Shown here: in pieces, positions 6,360-16,779 of the stretch
Layout: every line of letters begins with the position of its first letter
Position numbering within the stretch: the stretch's first letter is position 1
NCBI RefSeq assembly: GCF_000737315.1
Contig: NZ_JMCB01000002.1
Span: 248,001-312,000 of the forward strand
Reading direction: 5' to 3'
Length of the DNA stretch: 64,000 bases
From: Hyalangium minutum
GTDB taxonomy: Bacteria > Myxococcota > Myxococcia > Myxococcales > Myxococcaceae
Position numbers and translations under genes: made by a program
The notes under the pieces: model-generated
The model's input: the letters and a program-made list of their open reading frames with translations, nothing else
What the model was told of the DNA's origin: nothing
Databases searched by the model: none

Positions 6360-7529
6360 TCAGTGGAACGGAAGGGCCGCGAGCCGCTCCCGGAACATCT
6401 CCAGCGCCTCGCGCAGCTCCACGTCCTCCAGCCCCTCGCCAGGGGCGCGGCGGTGCTTGCGCAGGAAGGCATCGAAGGCCGCCGAGCGGCCATAGAGCTG
6501 GCTCGCCCTCTCCAGGGCCTCCAGCAGCACCCGCTCGGCTCCCGGTGAGCCCAGGTAGAGGTGCATCACGGCCTGCTCCAGCTTCGCGCCGCAGGCCGCC
6601 CACACCGCCCGGTCGTGCACCGTGAGCACCTGGGTGGTGAGCTCCTCGGCCACCCGCTCCAGCACCGCCAAGACCGGCTGCACCGCGCGCAGCAGCACCT
6701 CGCCCTCCACCCGGGGCTCGCGCGCCAGCTGCTGCAGCTGCTCGCGCAGCTCGATCAGGGTCCGCTTGTCGCGGGTGCGCATCGTCAGCGAGGCCGGCAT
6801 CGCCGCGAAGGACGAGAGGCTCTCCTCCACCTGCCGCGCGAGCGCCGGGAGCCCCTCGGGCGCTGTGCGCGCCACCCGCTCGAGCTTGCTCTGCAGCGAG
6901 CGGCGCAGGTCCATCACCGCGCTTCGCAGCCCCACCGCCGCCGCCATCTGCAGCCCGAACCCAGGGACCACCTCTTCGCGGCTCACTGCCTCGAAGGCCG
7001 CCGCCGTCAGGTACACCAGGTCTCCGATTCGCGAGCGGAAGTCGAGGCGGAAGGACTGCAGCTCCGTCATCAGCGCCCAGCGGTCCGTCACCACCTCCGG
7101 GCGGCGAACCCGCTCGCCCAGATCCGCCACCCGCCGCGCCAGCCGCTCCGCGCTCTGCTGGCAGACGGCCTCCACCTCCCGCGCCAGCCGCTCGTCCGCG
7201 CTGGCCGGGGGCGGCCTCCAGCCCGTGTCGCCTCCCGCCGAGCGCTCGGGGGCCGGGAACTGCGTGCGGATGACCGTGATGAGGTGGTTCACGTCTCCCA
7301 GCGTCTCTCCCAGCGCAGGGGCCATGGTCTCCCATAGCGAGAGGTCTGCTCCGTCCGGCTCGGCCGTGGTGGGCTCGTACTTGACGATGCTCAGGTACCC
7401 CAGCCGATCAATGGCCACCGCCGCGGCCCGGTACACCTGCTCCAACTGCTCGGCGTGCTCCCGATCCGTCAGTGCTTCGAGCAGCGCTTCGAGGCGCGGC
7501 GGGAGGGCGTCTTGAGGCGGGCGGGACAT
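6360..7529 (-). CDS. Hypothetical all-alpha-helical protein
   Basis: 389-aa ORF with strong GC3 bias; L/A/E/R-rich; no recognisable motif. Confidence 0.8.
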   Translation of the reverse strand: MSRPPQDALPPRLEALLEALTDREHAEQLEQVYRAAAVAIDRLGYLSIVKYEPTTAEPDGADLSLWETMAPALGETLGDVNHLITVIRTQFPAPERSAGGDTGWRPPPASADERLAREVEAVCQQSAERLARRVADLGERVRRPEVVTDRWALMTELQSFRLDFRSRIGDLVYLTAAAFEAVSREEVVPGFGLQMAAAVGLRSAVMDLRRSLQSKLERVARTAPEGLPALARQVEESLSSFAAMPASLTMRTRDKRTLIELREQLQQLAREPRVEGEVLLRAVQPVLAVLERVAEELTTQVLTVHDRAVWAACGAKLEQAVMHLYLGSPGAERVLLEALERASQLYGRSAAFDAFLRKHRRAPGEGLEDVELREALEMFRERLAALPFH

Positions 7530-7662
7530 GGCCGTGAGCATAGGGATGGGAAAGCTCGGGTATCAGGAACGTCTAACCGGGACGCTACCGCAAGTCCGAG
7601 AAAACCCCTCGATCGAGGCCACGAGCAAGGCTAGACACGGGCGCCTGCCCTCTGGAGCCCCC

Positions 7663-9216
7663 ATGCGCCTGAGCCTTGCTTCCCTTTTGGCCATTCTCTG
7701 TGTCAGTTGCAGCACTACCCCTCCGCCGTCTCCCACGCCTCCTCCGCCTCCCACGCCTCCGCTGTCGCCCGAGGCCACCGCCGTCTTCGCCCGCGCCGAG
7801 GCGCCCGGTCCTGGCGCCGCGCTCGTGGTGAACCTGGACGCCTTCGAGGCGCTGGGGCTCGCGGGCAAGGGGCCCACGATGCAGCAGCTGGCCAGCGTGT
7901 CCACCGCCATCATGTCCCAGCTCTCGACGGCGGAGGGCTCGGAGGGCCAGTTCTTCGCCCGGGGCGCCGTGGTGAGCGCCCTGCTGCGAGACTGGGCGAA
8001 GTGGCCCGGCCTGCGCCGTATTGCCTTCCTCGTCCCCTCGGACCGCGTCCTGGCGGACGGGGCTGGGGTTCTCCCCCAGGTGGCCGTGGGTGCATTGGCT
8101 GTGGATGAGGGCTCTCCGGACAACGCCCAGCTGCTCTCCGCCGTCGTCGCGCTTGTGCGTGCCGCGGCCGTGGAGGTGACACGTGAGGGCGCTGACCCCC
8201 GCGTCGTTCTCCAGGGACAGGACGTGTGCGTGGTGGGGAAGGAGCTGGGCTTCCCGGTGTGCGTCCGTCCCCGGCGCGGGCTGATCCTGTTCGGCACGCC
8301 CACGGCCCTGGGGGCGCTCGAGGCGCTGCCGCCCGTCACCGCACCGGCTGCCGCTCCCGGTGAGGCACCGCTGCTGCTGGGCCTGCGCGTGGATTTGGGC
8401 GCCAAGGGCCGCGCGCGCCTGGCCTTCACCGGCCGCGATGCGGTGCGTCTCGCGCTCCACGTGGAGGGCACCACCGCGAAGGACATCGCCATGGCCGAGT
8501 CCTTGGTGAAGAAGGCGCTCACGGATTACGACGCGCACCAGGCCGAGGTGCGTCAGCGCATCGCCACCGGCCTGTCCGAGGTGCAGCGCTCCATTGCCCA
8601 GGATCCCGCCGCGCCGGCCACGCTGAAGCAGGCGGCCACGGGCCTCACCGCGGACCGGGTGGTGGACGAGAAGGGCTACTGGGCCCAGGCGCGCCAGTCC
8701 GTGCAGGTGTCCTCCACGCAGGACAGCCTCTCCCTGTCGCTCACCGTCCCCGCGGGTGCGGTGAAGGACATGTCCGAGCAGATGGCCTCCGGCGGCACCC
8801 CCGTGGCCCTGGTGGGCATCATGGCCGCCATCGCCATCCCCAACTTCATCAAGTTCCAGGCGCGCGCCAAGCAGTCCGAGGCGAAGATGAACCTCAAGGC
8901 GGCCTATGTCGCCCAGCGCGCCTACGTGATGGAGAAGGACCGGTTGGGCCGCACCTTCGAGGAGATCGGCTTCGCGCCGGAGCCGGGCCGCCGTTACACC
9001 TACTGCATGGGCAAGCAGTGCCTGCCCTGTGACAGGAAGGACTGCAAAGTGGCGCCGGAGCCCTCGCCGTGCCAGGGGCTCACCACGCTGGGCAAGAGCG
9101 CGAATGACAACTTCTCCATCTGCGCGTACGGCAACGTGGACTCGGACGCCGCCTGGGATGTGTGGGTCATCGACAAGAGCGGCGAGCCGGAGAACCTGAG
9201 CAACGACATGGAGTAA
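7663..9216 (+). CDS. Lipoprotein with C-terminal PilA-like type IV pilin domain
   Basis: MRLSLASLLAILCVSC lipobox, Pro linker; C-terminal VGIMAAIAIPNFIKFQARAKQSEAKMNLK..Y..Q......DR......IGFAPE.G.RY.Y closely follows myxobacterial PilA. Confidence 0.85.
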   Translation: MRLSLASLLAILCVSCSTTPPPSPTPPPPPTPPLSPEATAVFARAEAPGPGAALVVNLDAFEALGLAGKGPTMQQLASVSTAIMSQLSTAEGSEGQFFARGAVVSALLRDWAKWPGLRRIAFLVPSDRVLADGAGVLPQVAVGALAVDEGSPDNAQLLSAVVALVRAAAVEVTREGADPRVVLQGQDVCVVGKELGFPVCVRPRRGLILFGTPTALGALEALPPVTAPAAAPGEAPLLLGLRVDLGAKGRARLAFTGRDAVRLALHVEGTTAKDIAMAESLVKKALTDYDAHQAEVRQRIATGLSEVQRSIAQDPAAPATLKQAATGLTADRVVDEKGYWAQARQSVQVSSTQDSLSLSLTVPAGAVKDMSEQMASGGTPVALVGIMAAIAIPNFIKFQARAKQSEAKMNLKAAYVAQRAYVMEKDRLGRTFEEIGFAPEPGRRYTYCMGKQCLPCDRKDCKVAPEPSPCQGLTTLGKSANDNFSICAYGNVDSDAAWDVWVIDKSGEPENLSNDME

Positions 9217-9277
9217 CAGACCAGGCAGGCAGGCACTTCCCCCCGGTCCGGCATAGAGTGGGGCCGGGGAGGAAGAC

Positions 9278-12200
9278 ATGAACGTCCGGTCCCGCCGCCG
9301 GCTCATTGCTGGCGGCATCTGTGCGGTGCTCGCGGGAGTCTCGCTCGCTGTTCTCAGCTCGCAGAGGTGTTTGTCCGCCTGGATCTTCCAGGGCGTGAAG
9401 GTGAGGCAGTGCCCGGATGGGCGCTTCCGGCAGACGGTGGGGCTGCAGGTGGATGGGCTGGCCCGTGAGCGCAGCGGCTCCGTGCGCGCCTGGGCCCTGG
9501 CCCATGGCGTGGGCAAGTCCTACAGCCAGGAGCTGCTGGCGCGCATGAAGCCCTCGAAGGCCGAGCTGGTGCTCCTGGATGCCGCGGGCCAGGAGACGCC
9601 GCTGAAGCCCGAGAAGGACTGGAAGCGGGAGGACAACGGAGACCTCTGGGCCGAGCTGAAGCTGCCCGCGCTCCCCGATGGCGACTACCGGCTGCGCGCT
9701 CGCATCACCACGCGCCTGGGCACGGACACCGTGGAGACCGCGCTTCCTTTATATGCACCCGCGCGAGTCCACGTTCTCACGGATCGCCCGCTCTACGAGC
9801 CCGGCCACCGCGTGCAGTTCCGCGCCGTGGCCCTGCGCGCCAAGGGACTGAGCCCCCTGGATGGGCGCCCGGGGACGTGGACGGTGGTGGACCCCAACGG
9901 AGACGTGGTGGTGGAGGAGCGGTCCCCCGCCGGTCCCTGGGGCGTGGTGTCTGGTGCCTTCCCGCTGGACCGCGGCGCGCCCACGGGCACGTGGACCGTG
10001 CGGTGGCTGAGCGGTGGCACCAGCGGAGAGGCTTCCTTCCGGGTGGAGCCCTTCACCCTGCCGCGCTTCCGGGTGGAGGCCTCCAGCCCTCAGGCCTTCT
10101 GGCGCGCGGGTGACGCGCCCGTGGTGGAGGGACAGGTGCTCTACAGCTCTGGAGCGCCCGTCGCGGGCGCGAAGGTGTCGCTGGAGTGGAATCACTTCGG
10201 AGGCTGGCCGCCTCCCACCGAGTGGTTCGATGGAGGCGGGCTGCCCGTCGCGGCGAAGGCGGATGCGGCCGGCCGCTTCCGGGTAACTCTGCCGCGCGTG
10301 CCTCAGGATCTGCGAGGCCAGGTCACGCTCTCCGCCAGCGTGGCGGCCACGGACCCTGCGGGCGATACCGTGCGCGGTGGCGTCTCCCTGCTGCTCTCCG
10401 AGGATGCGCTCGCCGTCTCCGCCGTGACCGAGCTGGAGTCCGGGTTGGTGGAGAACTACAGCAACCGCGTGTTCATCCGGGCCACCACTGCGGATGGGCA
10501 GGCGCTCCCAGGCGCCGAGCTCACCGTGAAGCGCGCGTGGGACCCCAAGGATCCGGGTGTGAAGACAGTGGCGGACGAGGATGGGGTCGCGTCCTTGCAG
10601 CTGGATCCGGGCGTCGCCGTCAACGTCGTTGTCCCCGCCATGCCCGTGCGCCGCAAGCCGCTGCCGAACCCGGTGGAGCTGATGGGCTCGAGTGACCTGC
10701 TCTCTCGCGACGAGGAGGCGGGCCTGGGGGATCAGGTGGCCCTGGAGAAGTGGCTGCCCGCCTTCTTCCCCTGCGCGCGCTTCATCGTCCCCGACTCGGC
10801 GGACACCGACCAGCAGCTGTCCGTCCGGGTGAGCTCCAGCGGAGCGGTGGTGGATGTGGTGGGCGAGCAGGGGCGGCTCTCGGCCTGTCTCGCGGATGCA
10901 GCCCGCACGCGGACGCTGCCTCCGGGGCGCGAGCGCATGCTGAACCTGACCCTGCAGCTCGTGGATCCCCAGCTGCCCACGCTCGGGGTCGAGATGAAGG
11001 CCGCGAACGACGGGCCCGTGGATTCGCGGCTCTATGCGGCGCTGGAAGAGGCGGCCCGTGATGCGCGCCCGTGTCTGCCCGCGAAGCTCTCCGAGGCGTC
11101 CGATGTGCCCGCCACCCTCCGGTGGCGGCTCCGGGCAGGCCAGAAGGATGTGGAGGTGGGGTGGGTGCCCGTCGAGAAGCAGGAAGGCGTCCCGATGCTC
11201 TCCTCCACGGTGCTCTCCTGCCTCCAGGCCCGGTTCTCGCGCCTGTCACTGCGCGATAGCTCGGATGAAGAGGTGGAGGCCTCGGACGAAGAGAGGGCAG
11301 GAGGGACCAAGGCGCAGCAGGACCAGATGGGCGTGGCGCTTCTCACGGCGGAGCCCGCGGAGGGCGATGGAGGCGAGGCTCGGGCGCAGGACACCACGCG
11401 CCTCGGCTTCGAGCTGATGGTGAGCGCCCAGGTGGAGGGCAAGGATGCCGGCTCTACGAAGCTCTTCCTGCCGCCCACGCGGCTGCCCACTCAGCGTCTG
11501 CGCGCCACACCTGCGCTGGCTCGCGCTGGCGAGGAGGTGCGTGTGGAGCTGCTCCGAGGTCCTGGCTTCAGTGGCTCACTGCCAGAGAAGCTCTGGTTGA
11601 GCGCGGGAGGAGAGCGGCTGGAGTCCCAGGTGGATTCGAAGTCCCGCGTGGCGACCTTCCGCCTGCCGGAGCAGTTCGAGGGCTGGGCCCAGGTGGACTG
11701 GGGAACAGCGGTGGCTCGCATCTACGTGGCGCCTCGCGCGCAGCTCTCCGTGGAGGTGGCTCCTGAGAAGCCCTCCTATGCTCCCGGTGAGGTGGCCCGC
11801 CTGCTGCTGCGCACCCGTGTGGATGGGAAGGACGGCCCCGCCGCCGTGGGCCTCTTCGGTGTGGATGAAGGGCTGGCGCAGCTGGCCTCGCTGCCGGGGC
11901 CGGGAGTGCTTGGGAGCCTGAGGCCCGCGCCCACGCTGGTCAGCTCCGCGTTCGGAGTGCTCGATGGACAGGCGCTCGCCATGGGCCGCATCCGAGGCGC
12001 CAACGCCGTGGCGGCCACCCTGCTGCGCGTCAGCTCGGCGCCCACCGTGGAGGAGTCGGACCCATCGCTGTCGCTCACCGCGCAGGCCGCCTTCGAGCCG
12101 GAGGCGGAGCTGACGGAGCCCTTCTACCGGGTGCTCGCTGAGCTGACCTCCCAGGTGCGTGTCTGGGAGGAGAAGGCTCCGGAAGGGGAGACGCTGAGCC

Positions 12201-12415
12201 CCGAGGGCATGGCGAAGCTGTGGGAGCAGGCGCTGGCGGCCTGCGAGAAGCGCGGAGAGCCGGTGACGGATGCCTACGGGCGCCGTCTGAAGCTGTCACG
12301 GCTGCCGCCCGAGCTGCTGGCCCTCACCGATCCCCGCATGGTGGTGGTGGGAGGGACGCGGCTGTCCGAAGACGTCGAGAACTGGGGCCAGTGGGTTGCC
12401 CGGGAGGCGCCATGA
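9278..12415 (+). CDS. Alpha-2-macroglobulin-like protein, N-terminal chain (MG domains)
   Basis: N-terminal TM; MG2 signature VLTDRPLYEPGHRVQFR, FRVEPFTLPRFRVE, and A2M_N_2-like KPSYAPGEVARL...AVGLFGVDEG. Confidence 0.85.
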   Translation: MNVRSRRRLIAGGICAVLAGVSLAVLSSQRCLSAWIFQGVKVRQCPDGRFRQTVGLQVDGLARERSGSVRAWALAHGVGKSYSQELLARMKPSKAELVLLDAAGQETPLKPEKDWKREDNGDLWAELKLPALPDGDYRLRARITTRLGTDTVETALPLYAPARVHVLTDRPLYEPGHRVQFRAVALRAKGLSPLDGRPGTWTVVDPNGDVVVEERSPAGPWGVVSGAFPLDRGAPTGTWTVRWLSGGTSGEASFRVEPFTLPRFRVEASSPQAFWRAGDAPVVEGQVLYSSGAPVAGAKVSLEWNHFGGWPPPTEWFDGGGLPVAAKADAAGRFRVTLPRVPQDLRGQVTLSASVAATDPAGDTVRGGVSLLLSEDALAVSAVTELESGLVENYSNRVFIRATTADGQALPGAELTVKRAWDPKDPGVKTVADEDGVASLQLDPGVAVNVVVPAMPVRRKPLPNPVELMGSSDLLSRDEEAGLGDQVALEKWLPAFFPCARFIVPDSADTDQQLSVRVSSSGAVVDVVGEQGRLSACLADAARTRTLPPGRERMLNLTLQLVDPQLPTLGVEMKAANDGPVDSRLYAALEEAARDARPCLPAKLSEASDVPATLRWRLRAGQKDVEVGWVPVEKQEGVPMLSSTVLSCLQARFSRLSLRDSSDEEVEASDEERAGGTKAQQDQMGVALLTAEPAEGDGGEARAQDTTRLGFELMVSAQVEGKDAGSTKLFLPPTRLPTQRLRATPALARAGEEVRVELLRGPGFSGSLPEKLWLSAGGERLESQVDSKSRVATFRLPEQFEGWAQVDWGTAVARIYVAPRAQLSVEVAPEKPSYAPGEVARLLLRTRVDGKDGPAAVGLFGVDEGLAQLASLPGPGVLGSLRPAPTLVSSAFGVLDGQALAMGRIRGANAVAATLLRVSSAPTVEESDPSLSLTAQAAFEPEAELTEPFYRVLAELTSQVRVWEEKAPEGETLSPEGMAKLWEQALAACEKRGEPVTDAYGRRLKLSRLPPELLALTDPRMVVVGGTRLSEDVENWGQWVAREAP

Positions 12416-14787
12416 AGCGCTCACTGTTGATGTTCATGGCTGGAGTTCTGTTCACCCTGTTCGCCCTGTTCACGCTGGTGTTGTTCGGGGACAGCATCCG
12501 CAGGCTCTTCGGCGCGTCCGCTTCCGCGTTGGCGGGCAACCAAGAGTCCTCCAGCTATTACTCCATGGCTCCGGCAGCTCCCTCGGCCCAGGCCGCGCCC
12601 GAGCCTGCTCCCGTCGAGGCGGAGATGGACGCGTTGGCGGGCGGCGGGGCCAGCAGCGAGCGCATGCGGGGCCTGTCGATGAAGCGCATGGAGACCATCC
12701 AGATCATCAAGGGCACCGGAGGCGCTGCGGCGAAGCCCAAGGTGGCCCTCGCCGAGGGTGGGGCGCAGGCCGAGGCCGCGGCCCCGAGCCGCGCCTGGTT
12801 CCCGGAGACGTTCCTCTTCGAGCCCCTCAAGGTGACGGACGAGTCCGGACAAGCGGTAGTGCCGGTAAAGGTGCCGGACCGGCTGACGCGGTGGCGGGTG
12901 CTGGCGCTGGCGCACTCGCGCTCGGGCGCGCAGGCCGGAGCGGTGACGAGCTTCTCGGGCACACTGCCCACGTATGTGGATCCGGTGGTGCCCGCCTTCC
13001 TGTTCACGGGGGATGCCGTGCGCCTGCCCGTGCAGGTGGTGAACACCACGGAGCAGGCGGTGGAGCAGCCGCTGAAGCTGGTGGCTGATGGCGCGGTGGT
13101 GGAGGGCGCCGCCACCCGCACCGTGCGGGTGCCCGCTCAGGGCAGCGTGGTGGAGTACGTGACGCTGAAGGCCACCCAGCCCGGCCCTGTCTCCTTGCAG
13201 GCCTCGCTGGGCACCACGGACGCCATCGTGCGCAGCTTCGATGTGAAGCCCACCGGCCGCCGGGTGGACCAGTCACGCGCGGGCTCGCTCGCGGCGCCGC
13301 GCACCCTGACGCTGGACGGTGTTGCCGACGCGCAGGCGGGCAGTGAGCGGGTGCGGCTGCAGGTGTTCCCGGGGGCTCTGGGCATGCTGCGCGCGGAGCT
13401 CTCCGCGGCGCCTGGGCGCTGGGGACTGGCGGAGGATGCGTATGCGCTGCTCTTGGCGGGCCGCGCGCCCGAGCTGCTGAAGTCGCTCGGGGAGACGGCG
13501 GATGCCGAGGCCCTCAAGGCCATGGCCTCCTTGTCCGGTCAGCGGGTGCTGCGAGCGGCCCGGGCACCGGATGTGCCCACTGCGGCCCTGCTGGCCCAGG
13601 CTGCACTGCAGCACCCGGACAACCCGGTGCTGTCCCGCCTGGGGGAGCGCCTGTCCGCGCAGGTGGCCAACGCCCAGCGTCCGGATGGCACGTGCCAGGG
13701 CGGGGACGGGTGGACGCTGCAGCGGTTACTCGTGGCCACCGCAGATTGTGCGCAGGCCGTGCGCGCGGGCGCCTCTCTCTCGGTGCCGGGCAAGCAGCGG
13801 GCTGCGGCCTTCTCCGCGCGCGCCATGGGGGCTTTCGAGCGCAACCTCTCGCGCGTGCAGGACGGCTACACCGCGGCGGCCATCCTGGCCAGCGGCGGGG
13901 TGACGGGCTCGCTCCAGGAGGCGTTGCGGGCCAAGGTGCGCGAGTCCTTGAAGAAGCGAGACGACGGCGCCGCATACCTGCCGGTGGAGCAGGGCGTGGT
14001 GCGCGCGGACGGAACGGTGCCGGGGGAGGCTGAAGCGACGGCGCTGGCAGTGCTCGCGCTCACGGGAGACAAGGCGGCGCCAATGGCGGACCTGGGCACC
14101 TCGCTGCTGGCCAGCTACCAGCCGGGGTGGGGCTGGGGGGATGGGCGCACCAACCTCCTGAGCCTCCAGGCCGCGATGGTGCTCTTCTCCGAGCCGCTGC
14201 CCTCACAGGTGCGCGTGGTGCTCGAGCGTGACGGGAAGACGGTGACCGAGGGCACCTTCGACGCCAAGGCCCTGCGGGACGTGCTCTCGATGGAGGCGGC
14301 GGCGATGGGCTCGGCAGGGACGCACACGTGGACGGTGCGCGCGGAGCCGGCGGTGCCTGGCCTGGGCTACTCGCTCACGTTGAGCGCGTACGTGCCGTGG
14401 AAGGCCGAGAAGGGCCAGGGACTGGAGCTGGCGGTGAAGGCGCCCGCCGAGGGCAAGGTGGGGATGCCGGCCGAGGTGACAGTGCAGGCGGCCTCTCCGG
14501 CGGGCATGGCACTCCAACTGCGCTACGCGTTGCCCGCGGGGGTCCAGGTGGACACTCCGAGCCTCGAGCGGCTCGTGGCCGAGCGGAAGGTGACGAAGTA
14601 CGAGGTGGAGGATGGGGCGCTCACGCTCACCCTGCCACCGCGCGGCGCGGGCGAGCCCTTCCAGGCCAGCTTCCGCGTGGTGCCGACGCTGGCGGGGACG
14701 CTTCAGGGAGGGGCCTCCAGCCTCTTCCCCGAGGGGCGGCAGGATCTCGTCTCGTACGTCCCGCCCGCTCAGTGGACGGTGCGCTGA
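12412..14787 (+). CDS. Alpha-2-macroglobulin-like protein, C-terminal chain; no thioester motif
   Basis: Own N-terminal hydrophobic segment; RAWFPETFLFEP..TDESG...VPDRLTRWRV, YVDPVVPAFL..GD.V..PV.V.N. ATGA overlap with the upstream gene; no CxEQ. Confidence 0.85.
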   Translation: MKRSLLMFMAGVLFTLFALFTLVLFGDSIRRLFGASASALAGNQESSSYYSMAPAAPSAQAAPEPAPVEAEMDALAGGGASSERMRGLSMKRMETIQIIKGTGGAAAKPKVALAEGGAQAEAAAPSRAWFPETFLFEPLKVTDESGQAVVPVKVPDRLTRWRVLALAHSRSGAQAGAVTSFSGTLPTYVDPVVPAFLFTGDAVRLPVQVVNTTEQAVEQPLKLVADGAVVEGAATRTVRVPAQGSVVEYVTLKATQPGPVSLQASLGTTDAIVRSFDVKPTGRRVDQSRAGSLAAPRTLTLDGVADAQAGSERVRLQVFPGALGMLRAELSAAPGRWGLAEDAYALLLAGRAPELLKSLGETADAEALKAMASLSGQRVLRAARAPDVPTAALLAQAALQHPDNPVLSRLGERLSAQVANAQRPDGTCQGGDGWTLQRLLVATADCAQAVRAGASLSVPGKQRAAAFSARAMGAFERNLSRVQDGYTAAAILASGGVTGSLQEALRAKVRESLKKRDDGAAYLPVEQGVVRADGTVPGEAEATALAVLALTGDKAAPMADLGTSLLASYQPGWGWGDGRTNLLSLQAAMVLFSEPLPSQVRVVLERDGKTVTEGTFDAKALRDVLSMEAAAMGSAGTHTWTVRAEPAVPGLGYSLTLSAYVPWKAEKGQGLELAVKAPAEGKVGMPAEVTVQAASPAGMALQLRYALPAGVQVDTPSLERLVAERKVTKYEVEDGALTLTLPPRGAGEPFQASFRVVPTLAGTLQGGASSLFPEGRQDLVSYVPPAQWTVR

Positions 14788-14850
14788 GCGCAACTTTCCC
14801 AGGGCAGCCGTGTTTCACCCGGAAGACCCATTTTTCATGGAGCATTCCGG

Positions 14851-15975
14851 ATGGACCGAGCGATGTGGAAGGCCGTGGTGTTCGCGGGAGTCGTGGGGCT
14901 GAGCCTGACGGCGGGGGCGCAGCCTGTGGATGAGCAGGTGAGCGCAGGCTTGGAGTTTCTCGATCCTGAGTTCCGAGGGCTGTCGGCGACGTACCAGGAC
15001 AACAACCGGTGGATATGGCAGGCGCCCGTGGATCCGGTGACGGGAGTCATCCTCTCGTCTCAGCGCCAGCTCATCGACGGCCAGGCCACGTCCCTGCTCG
15101 AGTCCTTCCAGGGGCCCGAGTGGGTCCGAGGCAGCGACCGCATCCTTTATACGAAGACGGTCGACTCCGTTCCCAACCTCTGGATCAAGCGCCCCGGCAT
15201 GTCCCCCGCGCAGATCACCGCGCCGCCTGCGGCTCGCTATCTGCTCACGGGCATCCTCACGTCCCGGGGCACCGTGAAGGTGGTGTACCGCCGCAAGGAG
15301 ACGCTGGCCGGCGGTGGGCTCTCCCAGGGCGTGTACTGGCTGGACACCGCCACGCCTTCGGTCGAGCACCTGCTGCCCGGCGCGGACTTGGGCGTGGCGC
15401 CCGTGAGCTGGATTCCGGGTACTGAGGACCTCGTGTACACCCAGCAGCACGACATGGATCCGGGGCCGAGGGAACAGTGGGTGTCCCAGCTTGTTCGCCT
15501 GTCGACCGCGACGGGGGCCATCACCGTGCTCACGAGTGATTTGGACGCGAAAGAGGACTCCTTCGCGTTCCAGGCGCCGGAGGCGCAGCAGGCGCTGCGC
15601 TATGCGACGGTGGTGAATGGCGGCACCCTGCGAATCTATGGAGAAAGCGCTGCGGCGTGGGTCGACCTGCAGCCCCCATCGCAGCTGGGGTTCATGTACT
15701 CGCCCGAGGTGTTCCAGGCCCGCGACAGCCAGGGCACGGTGCGGACCTATTTCGTGGTGGTGATGCGCGCCAGCACCAACCCAGGGGACGTGGGAGAGGT
15801 GTGGGTGCTTGGCCTGAACGGCAGCGCGCTCCGGGTGGATGGCGGCACCGCGAGCCAGCCGCGCCAGCCGGCGGATCCGGAGGTCATCGCGGGTAGCAGC
15901 GAGATCTTCGTGTACTACAACAACTCGGCGAACCTGGCGCTGTGGCGGAGCCGCACGGGCCTGGCCGTGCCCTGA
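14851..15975 (+). CDS. Secreted beta-rich hypothetical protein (possible TolB-like propeller)
   Basis: Sec signal (LSLTAGA-Q); repeated Trp-containing blade-like segments (PEWVRGSDRILYT, PVSWIPGTEDLVYT). Confidence 0.7.
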   Translation: MDRAMWKAVVFAGVVGLSLTAGAQPVDEQVSAGLEFLDPEFRGLSATYQDNNRWIWQAPVDPVTGVILSSQRQLIDGQATSLLESFQGPEWVRGSDRILYTKTVDSVPNLWIKRPGMSPAQITAPPAARYLLTGILTSRGTVKVVYRRKETLAGGGLSQGVYWLDTATPSVEHLLPGADLGVAPVSWIPGTEDLVYTQQHDMDPGPREQWVSQLVRLSTATGAITVLTSDLDAKEDSFAFQAPEAQQALRYATVVNGGTLRIYGESAAAWVDLQPPSQLGFMYSPEVFQARDSQGTVRTYFVVVMRASTNPGDVGEVWVLGLNGSALRVDGGTASQPRQPADPEVIAGSSEIFVYYNNSANLALWRSRTGLAVP

Positions 15976-15993
15976 GCGGCGCCTCGTCTCTTC

Positions 15994-16779
15994 TCAGCGC
16001 CCCATCAACCACTGGAGCAGCGCTTGAGGGGCATCCACGTGGACGAAGTGGCCGGCCTCCGGAAGCAGGGCCACGGGGCAGCCGGCCGCCTCCATGCGAG
16101 CCGCGTCCGCGTCCGTCACATACCGGGAGCGCCCTCCGCGAATGCAGCGCACCTTCGCGCCTGGGCGCTCCACCGCTGCCCACAGGTTCGTCCCGTTCAC
16201 CCGGCCGTGCAGCTCCGCCAGCGCCTGCCGGTCAAAGCGCCAGCGCACCCCTCCCTCCGGCGTGGAGACGAGGTTCATCACCAGCCAGTCCGCCAGCGGC
16301 TCCGAGAGGCCCTGGCCCGTCAACGCCGCGCGTATCTCCCGGCGGTTGGCGGCGGTCTCGGGCGCCTGGAGCAACACGTTCAGCACCATTCCGCTCTCCG
16401 AGAGGTCCACGGGCACGGGGCTCGGCGAGATGTCGAGCAGCGTCACGCTGGCCACATCCGAGGGTGAGGCGAGGCTGGCCGCGAGCGACACCCGGCCCCC
16501 CAGCGAGTGGCCCACGAGCTCCAGCGGTCCGGTGAGGCCCTTGGCGCGCGCCGTCTCCACCACGTCCCGCGCCATCGTCGTCAGGTCCGTCCCCGGGGGC
16601 ATGGGCAGCGAGCCGCCATGGCCCGTCAGGTCCGGCATCAGGAAGCGCCGGCTCGGATCGGCCGCGCTCCACGCGTTGGCCAGCGAGCGCAGGTTGCGCC
16701 CCGAGCCCAGGAAGCCATGCAGCAGGACGGTGGGCACTTCTCCCTCGCCCAGTTGGAGACTCTCGAGAACCACACGCAC
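15994..16779 (-). CDS. Alpha/beta hydrolase (YbfF-like esterase)
   Basis: LLHGFLGS, GHSLGG nucleophile elbow, LLDISP, AGHFVH; GTG start after GGAAAGGGA. Confidence 0.9.
   Translation of the reverse strand: MRVVLESLQLGEGEVPTVLLHGFLGSGRNLRSLANAWSAADPSRRFLMPDLTGHGGSLPMPPGTDLTTMARDVVETARAKGLTGPLELVGHSLGGRVSLAASLASPSDVASVTLLDISPSPVPVDLSESGMVLNVLLQAPETAANRREIRAALTGQGLSEPLADWLVMNLVSTPEGGVRWRFDRQALAELHGRVNGTNLWAAVERPGAKVRCIRGGRSRYVTDADAARMEAAGCPVALLPEAGHFVHVDAPQALLQWLMGR

Follow-up and report, generated by a model that had tools for sequence, protein, structure and literature searches.

The locus considered here raises the question of whether a macroglobulin can be built from two separately encoded chains and, if so, which of the genes beside it belong to the same system. 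The locus lies in a stretch of 64,000 nucleotides from the myxobacterium Hyalangium minutum (contig NZ_JMCB01000002.1, positions 248,001 to 312,000, forward strand), which is referred to as the window and from whose first letter all coordinates below are counted. Between positions 7663 and 15975 of the window, four forward-strand genes designated g1 to g4 follow one another closely. The original prediction saw in them a single candidate envelope system, in which a pilin-tailed lipoprotein and a secreted protein accompany a split alpha-2-macroglobulin (A2M) without a thioester, and associated the whole with type IV pili or motility and not with the trapping of proteases. Searches of Pfam, NCBIfam, Protein Data Bank (PDB) sequences, Rfam and PADLOC, together with AlphaFold2 (AF2) models of the g1 and g3 proteins and Foldseek comparisons of their folds, define a smaller unit. 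The conserved unit of the locus is the pair of genes g2 and g3, which encodes the two halves of the macroglobulin. The split pair is broadly conserved in Myxococcota-type genomes and reaches at least one lineage of low guanine-plus-cytosine (GC) content, and there is no NCBIfam model for either half.

Conservation of the two-gene pair

The g2 gene (9278–12415, forward strand) encodes 1045 amino acids, the N-terminal half of the split A2M, and the g3 gene (12412–14787, forward strand) encodes the 791 amino acids of the C-terminal half. The sequence ATGA (12412–12415) contains both the stop of g2 and the start of g3, with a GGGAGG ribosome-binding site just 5' of it, and this overlap indicates translational coupling of the two genes. 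For comparison, 80 related genome loci were gathered with a g3 profile and the proteins of the window were mapped onto them by tblastn. The g2 gene adjoins g3 wherever upstream DNA was present. At all 68 loci in which both halves were readable, a stop codon closes g2 and the frame of g3 is a different one; at 69 of 70 loci a start codon is placed so that the two genes overlap by exactly 4 nucleotides. The exception is a locus of Cystobacter fuscus strain NCWS (L078, approximately 9680–10330), where similarity to g3 begins only at residue 227 and a 650-nucleotide gap follows the g2 stop. The pair occurs without g1 and g4, and its neighbours vary between loci. Of the conserved synteny proposed for the four genes, that of g2 with g3 was borne out across the 80 loci and additional contigs, that of g4 was not, and that of g1 is at best restricted to one clade.

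The two-gene arrangement extends to remote relatives. At E ≤ 1e-30, g3 has matches in 213 clusters (50% identity) among 1.84 billion cluster representatives; of the 150 best-scoring representatives, almost all have lengths of 720–830 amino acids. The sole apparent single-chain member among these 150 is P0181 (1801 amino acids). A lipoprotein signal, MKRTGIASLLLIAALSPSFGC, lies inside it, and the Arg/Gly-rich stretch ahead of this signal seems to be read in the wrong frame; P0181 therefore most probably represents a pair of genes that an error in sequencing or gene calling has fused. For three distant relatives found on contigs (P0266, P0248, and P0335), a gene of about 1000 amino acids with macroglobulin domain MG2, or the tail of such a gene, abuts or overlaps the one for the C-terminal half. 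P0266, which belongs to a genome of 44% GC, shares 31% identity with g3; for P0248, which has a polytopic membrane domain, the figure is 37%. Counterparts of g2 and g3 abut or overlap in the distant loci L090 and L091. Since the split is kept at every readable locus and in these distant relatives, the two-gene design is old and under selection, and not the product of a frameshift artefact.

Several individual records add detail to this distribution. In L090 (European Nucleotide Archive ERZ24794637, a 1.19 Mb contig), the pair is found at 31–33% identity in a genome of 44% GC, and its C-terminal half opens with the lipoprotein signal MLYILFAC...; the 44% GC of this genome means that the split-A2M family extends well beyond the high-GC Myxococcaceae. 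A record titled "Comamonas sp. KCTC 72670" (L024, BNCN01000015.1) contains a locus of the Myxococcus type, in which g3 has 62%, g2 57%, and the divergent upstream gene 63% identity, and the record is probably mislabelled or contaminated. In a motif-based length analysis, 103 of 111 representatives of the g3 family carry only an anchor and a linker of 50–170 amino acids ahead of the conserved motif. Many of these N-termini resemble lipoprotein signals and not transmembrane anchors when screened with a rough regular expression. Large N-terminal additions replace the simple anchor in a few other relatives of the C-terminal half, including those of loci L091 and L092. They consist of a polytopic membrane domain of about 400 amino acids in P0248 and P0263, an N-terminal domain of 300–400 amino acids without assignment in P0309, P0313, and P0241, and in P0182 an RcpC/CpaB domain of Tad pilus assembly (30.4 bits against a cut-off of 28.8).

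Architecture of the two halves

The g2 protein begins with a hydrophobic segment (residues 7–29) that is kept in 25 of 28 relatives. Pfam places an MG2 domain at residues 163–256 (E = 1.8e-18, above the cut-off), which is followed by an MG3-like segment at 283–341, and the family profile aligns to MG2-MG3 of A2ML1, A2M, CD109, and C5. Further downstream, residues 814–869 give a weak match to A2M_BRD, the bait-region domain that corresponds to the first half of MG6. The family has an invariant Cys31/Cys45 pair and an insert with four further invariant cysteines (residues 499, 537, 599, and 648). The tail (residues 870–1045) yielded only noise in the PDB sequence search and no match in Pfam or NCBIfam. 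Neither g2 nor g3 of the window has a lipobox.

The g3 protein likewise opens with a hydrophobic segment (residues 1–30), which is kept in 64 of 65 relatives, and Pfam identifies an A2M domain (PF00207) at residues 133–218. The order of its parts is an anchor, a linker, the motifs RAWFPETFLFEP...LTRWRVLALAHS corresponding to the second half of MG6, MG7, CUB, a thioester-type alpha/alpha toroid (residues 321–591), and an MG8-like C-terminal beta domain. The mean predicted local distance difference test (pLDDT) score of the AF2 model is 83, and 505 residues exceed 90. The model consists of a helix (3–40), the linker (41–135), beta structure (160–320), the toroid, and a second beta region (599–790). 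The linker (12532–12816, forward strand), which stands between the anchor and the first folded domain, is of low complexity, falls below a pLDDT of 50, and is variable in family alignments. In position it corresponds to the C-terminal portion of an A2M bait region. In Foldseek searches the g3 model was matched best by the alpha chains of complement C3 and C5 (E ~1e-28), and further matches included A2ML1, CD109, A2M, TEP1, and the Salmonella A2M (4u48, E ~1e-23), over ~700–790 alignment columns. The last domain of g3, which is MG8-like, aligns to MG8 of C5, and the protein ends there. Pfam detected neither an anaphylatoxin nor a C345C domain in g2 or g3.

The position of the split could be located by alignment. 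Sequence alignments of g3 to A2M and A2ML1 begin at about residue 700 of these proteins, straight after the bait region. In the same alignments, the invariant stretch RAWFPETFLFEP...PDRLTRWRVLALAHS of g3 corresponds to the FPE(S/T)W(L/I)W...(I/L)T.W motifs with which the post-bait part of A2M opens; the C3 alpha chain opens with such motifs as well. The division between the genes thus falls at the position of the bait region and MG6, and a disordered segment of ~100 amino acids follows the g3 anchor; that this segment is sensitive to proteases is speculation only. Residues 127–190 of g3 are the most conserved in the family, yet they form the least confident folded part of the model (pLDDT 35–72, as against >90 elsewhere), a combination that fits a half-domain in need of its partner. 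In C3, MG6 is built from both chains. By inference from the g3 model, residues 127–190 may represent half of an MG6 domain that g2 completes.

The CxEQ thioester motif is found nowhere in g3. Among 150 representative g3 relatives it occurs once only, at residue 24 of P0239, which is inside the N-terminal anchor. The loop at the start of the toroid (residues 334–342, PGRWGLAED; 13411–13437, forward strand) is the expected site of CxEQ and contains no cysteine; across 104 representatives it is variable, gapped, and Cys-free, the positional equivalence being drawn from the fold and the local sequence pattern and not from a residue-level structural alignment. Judged from these sequences, the g3 family as a whole is without a thioester. 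Accepted members of the superfamily such as C5 and MagD are also without one. MG domains are present in g2 and the order MG7-CUB-toroid-MG8 is present in g3, as in other A2Ms, while CxEQ is missing. The claim of a split, thioester-less A2M therefore stands on the MG2 domain of g2, the A2M domain of g3, and the lack of CxEQ, with the addition that the split is evolutionarily conserved.

Genes beside the pair

The layout originally described for the window, four co-oriented genes separated by 61, –4, and 63 nucleotides, agrees with the coordinates, with a public gene call, and with codon statistics. The first gap spans 9217–9277, the second value is the ATGA overlap, and the third gap spans 14788–14850. 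On the identical contig (JMCB01000002.1, GCA_000737315.1), publicly available and independent gene predictions contain the same four products of 517, 1045, 791, and 374 amino acids. The accession series of this assembly is the one listed in PMC6060248 for H. minutum DSM 14724. Third-position GC is 0.86–0.90 in g1 to g4, and since this matches the expectation for a genome of 70% GC, which is also approximately the composition of the window, all four are real genes. Export or anchor signals were correctly attributed to all four, namely a lipobox in g1, hydrophobic N-termini in g2 and g3, and a Sec-type signal in g4.

The g1 gene (7663–9216, forward strand) encodes a 517-amino-acid lipoprotein with a PilA-derived tail, as had been proposed, and is a clade-restricted neighbour of the pair. 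Cys16 of its lipobox is nearly invariant, a Pro-rich tether comes next, and the family is well conserved. A novel N-domain (approximately residues 30–375) precedes a PilA-derived module (381–517), within which Pfam places Pilin_PilA at 398–460. The AF2 model (pLDDT 72) has a mixed alpha/beta N-domain, a helix at 381–425, and strands at 446–503. The only significant fold match in the PDB was PilA of Myxococcus xanthus (8TJ2). Foldseek aligns the C-terminal module with it over 187 columns at 36% identity, and along the alpha1 helix the two hardly differ. An ARPC2-like fold was considered for the N-domain and set aside, the match (E ~0.15) being too weak; this domain has no significant fold match.

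The PilA similarity opens at mature PilA residue 10, and the g1 residues ahead of it, ...SGGTP, come after the 380-amino-acid domain. Because the similarity starts there, g1 is without the leader peptide, Phe1, and Glu5. The alpha1 helix and the beta head are present, and the class III signal peptide (Gly-1, Phe+1, Glu+5) is not. Type IV pilins need the leader peptide, Phe1, and Glu5 for processing by the prepilin peptidase and for the usual polymerisation; with all three missing, g1 cannot be processed or polymerised as a conventional pilin. The head (residues 381–517; 8803–9213) has six nearly invariant cysteines, including a CX4CX2CX4C cluster (C448, C453, C456, and C461) that M. xanthus PilA does not have. 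With a lipoprotein N-terminus, the first 380 residues would be extracytoplasmic. Were the 15–19 remaining hydrophobic residues of alpha1 to span the membrane, the Cys-rich head would be cytoplasmic, so that the predicted topology of g1 presents a puzzle. The name "type IV pilin protein" given to the g1 family in databases is misleading, for g1 is a major-pilin head recycled onto a lipoprotein.

The distribution of g1 is narrow. All of its 53 homologues are in Hyalangium-like organisms, Archangium gephyra, and a few related Myxococcaceae. It adjoins the pair at 4 of the 80 loci, with a remnant at a fifth (L006) and five loci found separately, about nine in all, and stands directly upstream of the pair in L002, L005, L007, L009, L083, L084, L088, and L089, at identities down to 46%. 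The L006 remnant is ~300 nucleotides long, and g1 is gone from Hyalangium versicolor and from L004. In the tblastn survey of the 80 loci, g1 was not found at the pair loci of Myxococcus, Corallococcus, Cystobacter, and most Archangium. Archangium gephyra has an intact, 71%-identical g1 about 4 Mb from its A2M pair, among menaquinone and kinase genes. The idea that g1 had moved there together with the upstream 393-amino-acid gene was rejected, since the A. gephyra gene divergent from g1 is no paralogue of that gene. A replacement of g1 in Archangium was likewise rejected, because only unrelated cytoplasmic genes lie upstream of g2 in Archangium violaceum. In the Hyalangium group, g1 is a long-standing upstream neighbour of the pair that is dispensable and able to live elsewhere.

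At the other end of the cluster, g4 (14851–15975, forward strand) encodes a 374-amino-acid protein with a Sec-type signal, in which hydrophobic residues 8–26 are followed by AGA/QP. It belongs to no conserved unit. Only 3 homologues, 67–87% identical, were found among 5.8 billion proteins, and these together with its codon statistics indicate that g4 is a real gene. It lies beside the pair at none of the 80 loci and elsewhere only in one 87%-identical sister contig of the same arrangement; the H. versicolor copy is on another contig, among unrelated genes. There was no match in Pfam, NCBIfam, or PADLOC, and the PDB sequence search gave only noise. The g4 protein is a Hyalangium-specific secreted orphan that is merely downstream of the pair here.

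On the opposite strand, upstream of g1, a divergent gene (6360–7541, reverse strand) encodes an all-helical protein of 393 amino acids that lacks a signal sequence and matches no family. The gene is kept beside the pair in Hyalangium, Myxococcus, and Corallococcus (59–82% identity) and not in more distant loci. Peptidase genes were seen near the pair in a few places: an EAD1+Trypsin_2 protein is encoded directly 3' of it in M. faecalis (L086, 11626–12660), S41/Tricorn, M28, and C14 peptidases in L091 (11264–13839), and an M10/astacin-like peptidase in L089 (1–1204). Among the gene calls near the locus in the window there are no pil or motility genes.

Other searches of the region were negative. 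Scans for promoter and terminator consensus sequences from 7300 to 16300 gave nothing exceeding shuffled expectation, and Rfam matches and tRNAs were lacking over the whole window. PADLOC returned no defence-system match for the five proteins comprising g1 to g4 and the upstream 393-amino-acid protein. NCBIfam has no model for g2, g3, g4, the upstream gene, or their sub-regions, and a permissive Pfam search gave no credible match for the insert and tail of g2, the C-terminal 571 amino acids of g3, the g1 N-domain, g4, or the upstream gene.

Possible functions and comparison with known systems

The reading that we favour, and consider moderately probable, is that the locus has at its core a two-chain A2M that is encoded by two translationally coupled genes, is anchored in the inner membrane, and acts as a non-covalent protease trap or shield in the periplasm. 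According to this proposal, g2 would supply a beta-chain-like half consisting of MG1-MG6, and g3 would supply an alpha-chain-like half consisting of the rest of MG6, MG7, CUB, the thioester-type domain without its thioester, and MG8. The break between the genes lies at the point at which single-chain A2Ms carry the bait region and at which C3, C4, and C5 are cut after translation into their beta and alpha chains. Each half starts with its own membrane anchor, and for this reason both are predicted to reside in the inner membrane and to face the periplasm. There, the g2 and g3 products would assemble into one macroglobulin, as an obligate heterodimer, by completing the shared MG6 domain. Having no thioester, the complex would act like Type II A2Ms such as MagD, that is, as a non-covalent trap or shield, and the disordered g3 tether of ~100 residues would be its likely protease-sensitive element.

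Several considerations weigh against this proposal. The heterodimer and its shared MG6 are deduced from a monomer model and from sequence, and the bait-like role of the g3 tether is speculative. The hydrophobic N-termini of g2 and g3 are predicted anchors, which might be uncleaved or might instead be signal peptides that are cleaved. About 345 residues of g2, in the Cys-containing insert and the tail 870–1045, are without an assigned fold and could bring a different activity. A consistent linkage of the pair to a protease gene was not seen, the peptidase neighbours described above being anecdotal, and the synteny evidence comes mostly from related Myxococcota. Finally, a non-inhibitory role, whether structural or signalling, is a serious rival. 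The proteins may form a real two-chain macroglobulin complex that serves as a structural or adhesive element of the envelope, or as a sensor that releases its C-terminal half on cleavage of the tether. C5 and other members of the macroglobulin fold are not protease inhibitors, which counts in favour of such a role. So do the missing thioester and the interruption of the bait by the split, as a result of which a bait-triggered "spring" may not operate, the large g2 inserts without assignment, and the varied anchors of the C-terminal halves (polytopic domains, RcpC). These points are opposed by the retention of the full series of MG7, CUB, thioester domain, and MG8 at high model confidence, and by the closest bacterial precedents, ECAM/Sa-A2M and MagD, which are protease traps, MagD being one without a thioester (PMC5764988). 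On balance, a function other than trapping is rather unlikely, while deserving to be kept in view.

The remaining explanations are less probable. The idea that g1 and g4 are devoted to the A2M, and that all four genes together specify a single scaffold of the envelope linked to type IV pili or motility, now seems very improbable, even though the genes are co-oriented with short gaps in the window, the order g1-g2-g3 recurs at about nine loci with g1 identity down to 46%, and one rare g3 relative has the N-terminal RcpC/CpaB (Tad pilus) domain. With 3 homologues only, g4 adjoins the pair at 0 of 80 loci and is unlinked in H. versicolor, and g1, which occurs in a minority of lineages, is absent from most pair-bearing genomes, reduced to a remnant in L006, lost in L003 and L004, and on its own in A. 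gephyra. The proposed link to type IV pili and motility finds no such genes associated with the pair, that single RcpC/CpaB relative excepted, and g1 itself is without the leader peptide, Phe1, and Glu5. A frameshift in a single A2M gene, as an example of an artefact or of recent pseudogenisation, could in principle produce a 4-nucleotide overlap with a change of frame, and the database does hold an apparent 1801-amino-acid fusion. The probability of this explanation is considered negligible in view of the split at 68 of 68 loci and the overlap at 69 of 70, kept down to ~31% identity, the probable miscall of the 1801-amino-acid protein, and the anchor and linker with which g3 always opens. A bolder proposal, which we regard as a long shot, is that gene fission has produced a genetically "pre-cleaved" macroglobulin, a bacterial counterpart of the two-chain C3 design, with a membrane tether standing in place of the intrachain bait; proteolysis of the disordered g3 tether, and not of a bait loop, would trigger or release the complex, and in the Hyalangium group g1 would be a dedicated accessory that joins this complex to another envelope structure.

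The pair provides a natural experiment on the need of macroglobulins for chain continuity, because the fission sits at the very point of the complement cut and the bait. The orthologues in M. xanthus offer a tractable system for the role of macroglobulins in predatory bacteria that secrete many proteases.

Bacterial A2Ms are now sorted into two single-chain types, and the literature searched (Myxococcus macroglobulins and bacterial A2M types) contained no description of a split or a myxobacterial A2M. Type I proteins carry CxEQ and are usually encoded beside pbpC (PMC5764988). The two halves described here resemble those of ECAM/YfhM and Sa-A2M in their MG domains, CUB, thioester-type domain, and MG8, and in predicted anchoring at the inner membrane. 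They differ from these ~1650-amino-acid, single-chain lipoproteins with CxEQ and an adjacent pbpC in every one of the latter features; no penicillin-binding protein gene occurs within 10 kb on either side of the pair, and no pbpC in the other loci examined. Cleavage of the Salmonella Sa-A2M yields fragments of 102 and 77 kDa (PMC5764988), which are near g2 and g3 in size. The Type II protein MagD, whose gene is one of six in the mag operon, is a single chain without CxEQ that MagB keeps at the inner membrane, and it traps protease non-covalently after cleavage of its bait (PMC5764988). With MagD of Pseudomonas aeruginosa and YfaS of E. coli the pair has in common the macroglobulin fold without CxEQ, a probable periplasmic and inner-membrane-associated location, and presumed non-covalent trapping of proteases. 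It is distinguished from the single chain of magABCDEF by its two overlapping genes and by the predicted anchor of each half, and no partners of the MagA, MagB, or MagF type are found within 10 kb of the pair or in the other loci examined.

For g1, the comparison is with M. xanthus PilA (8TJ2), with which it shares the head, while in g1 a 380-amino-acid lipoprotein domain stands in front. The comparison with complement proteins C3, C4, and C5 concerns both halves of the macroglobulin. Their alpha chains are the best structural matches of g3, and their chain break likewise lies between the halves of MG6, beside the bait/anaphylatoxin position. In contrast to the two genes of the pair, with a membrane anchor on each chain, the complement chains come from one precursor that is cut by a protease, and they contain C345C and anaphylatoxin domains. 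This likeness is one of architecture and does not indicate direct descent. Having two genes, anchors of their own, and no pbpC or mag partners, the pair belongs to neither bacterial type. The g2 and g3 genes represent a third arrangement, outside Type I and Type II, which most likely works like Type II and combines this with a C3-like, two-chain build.

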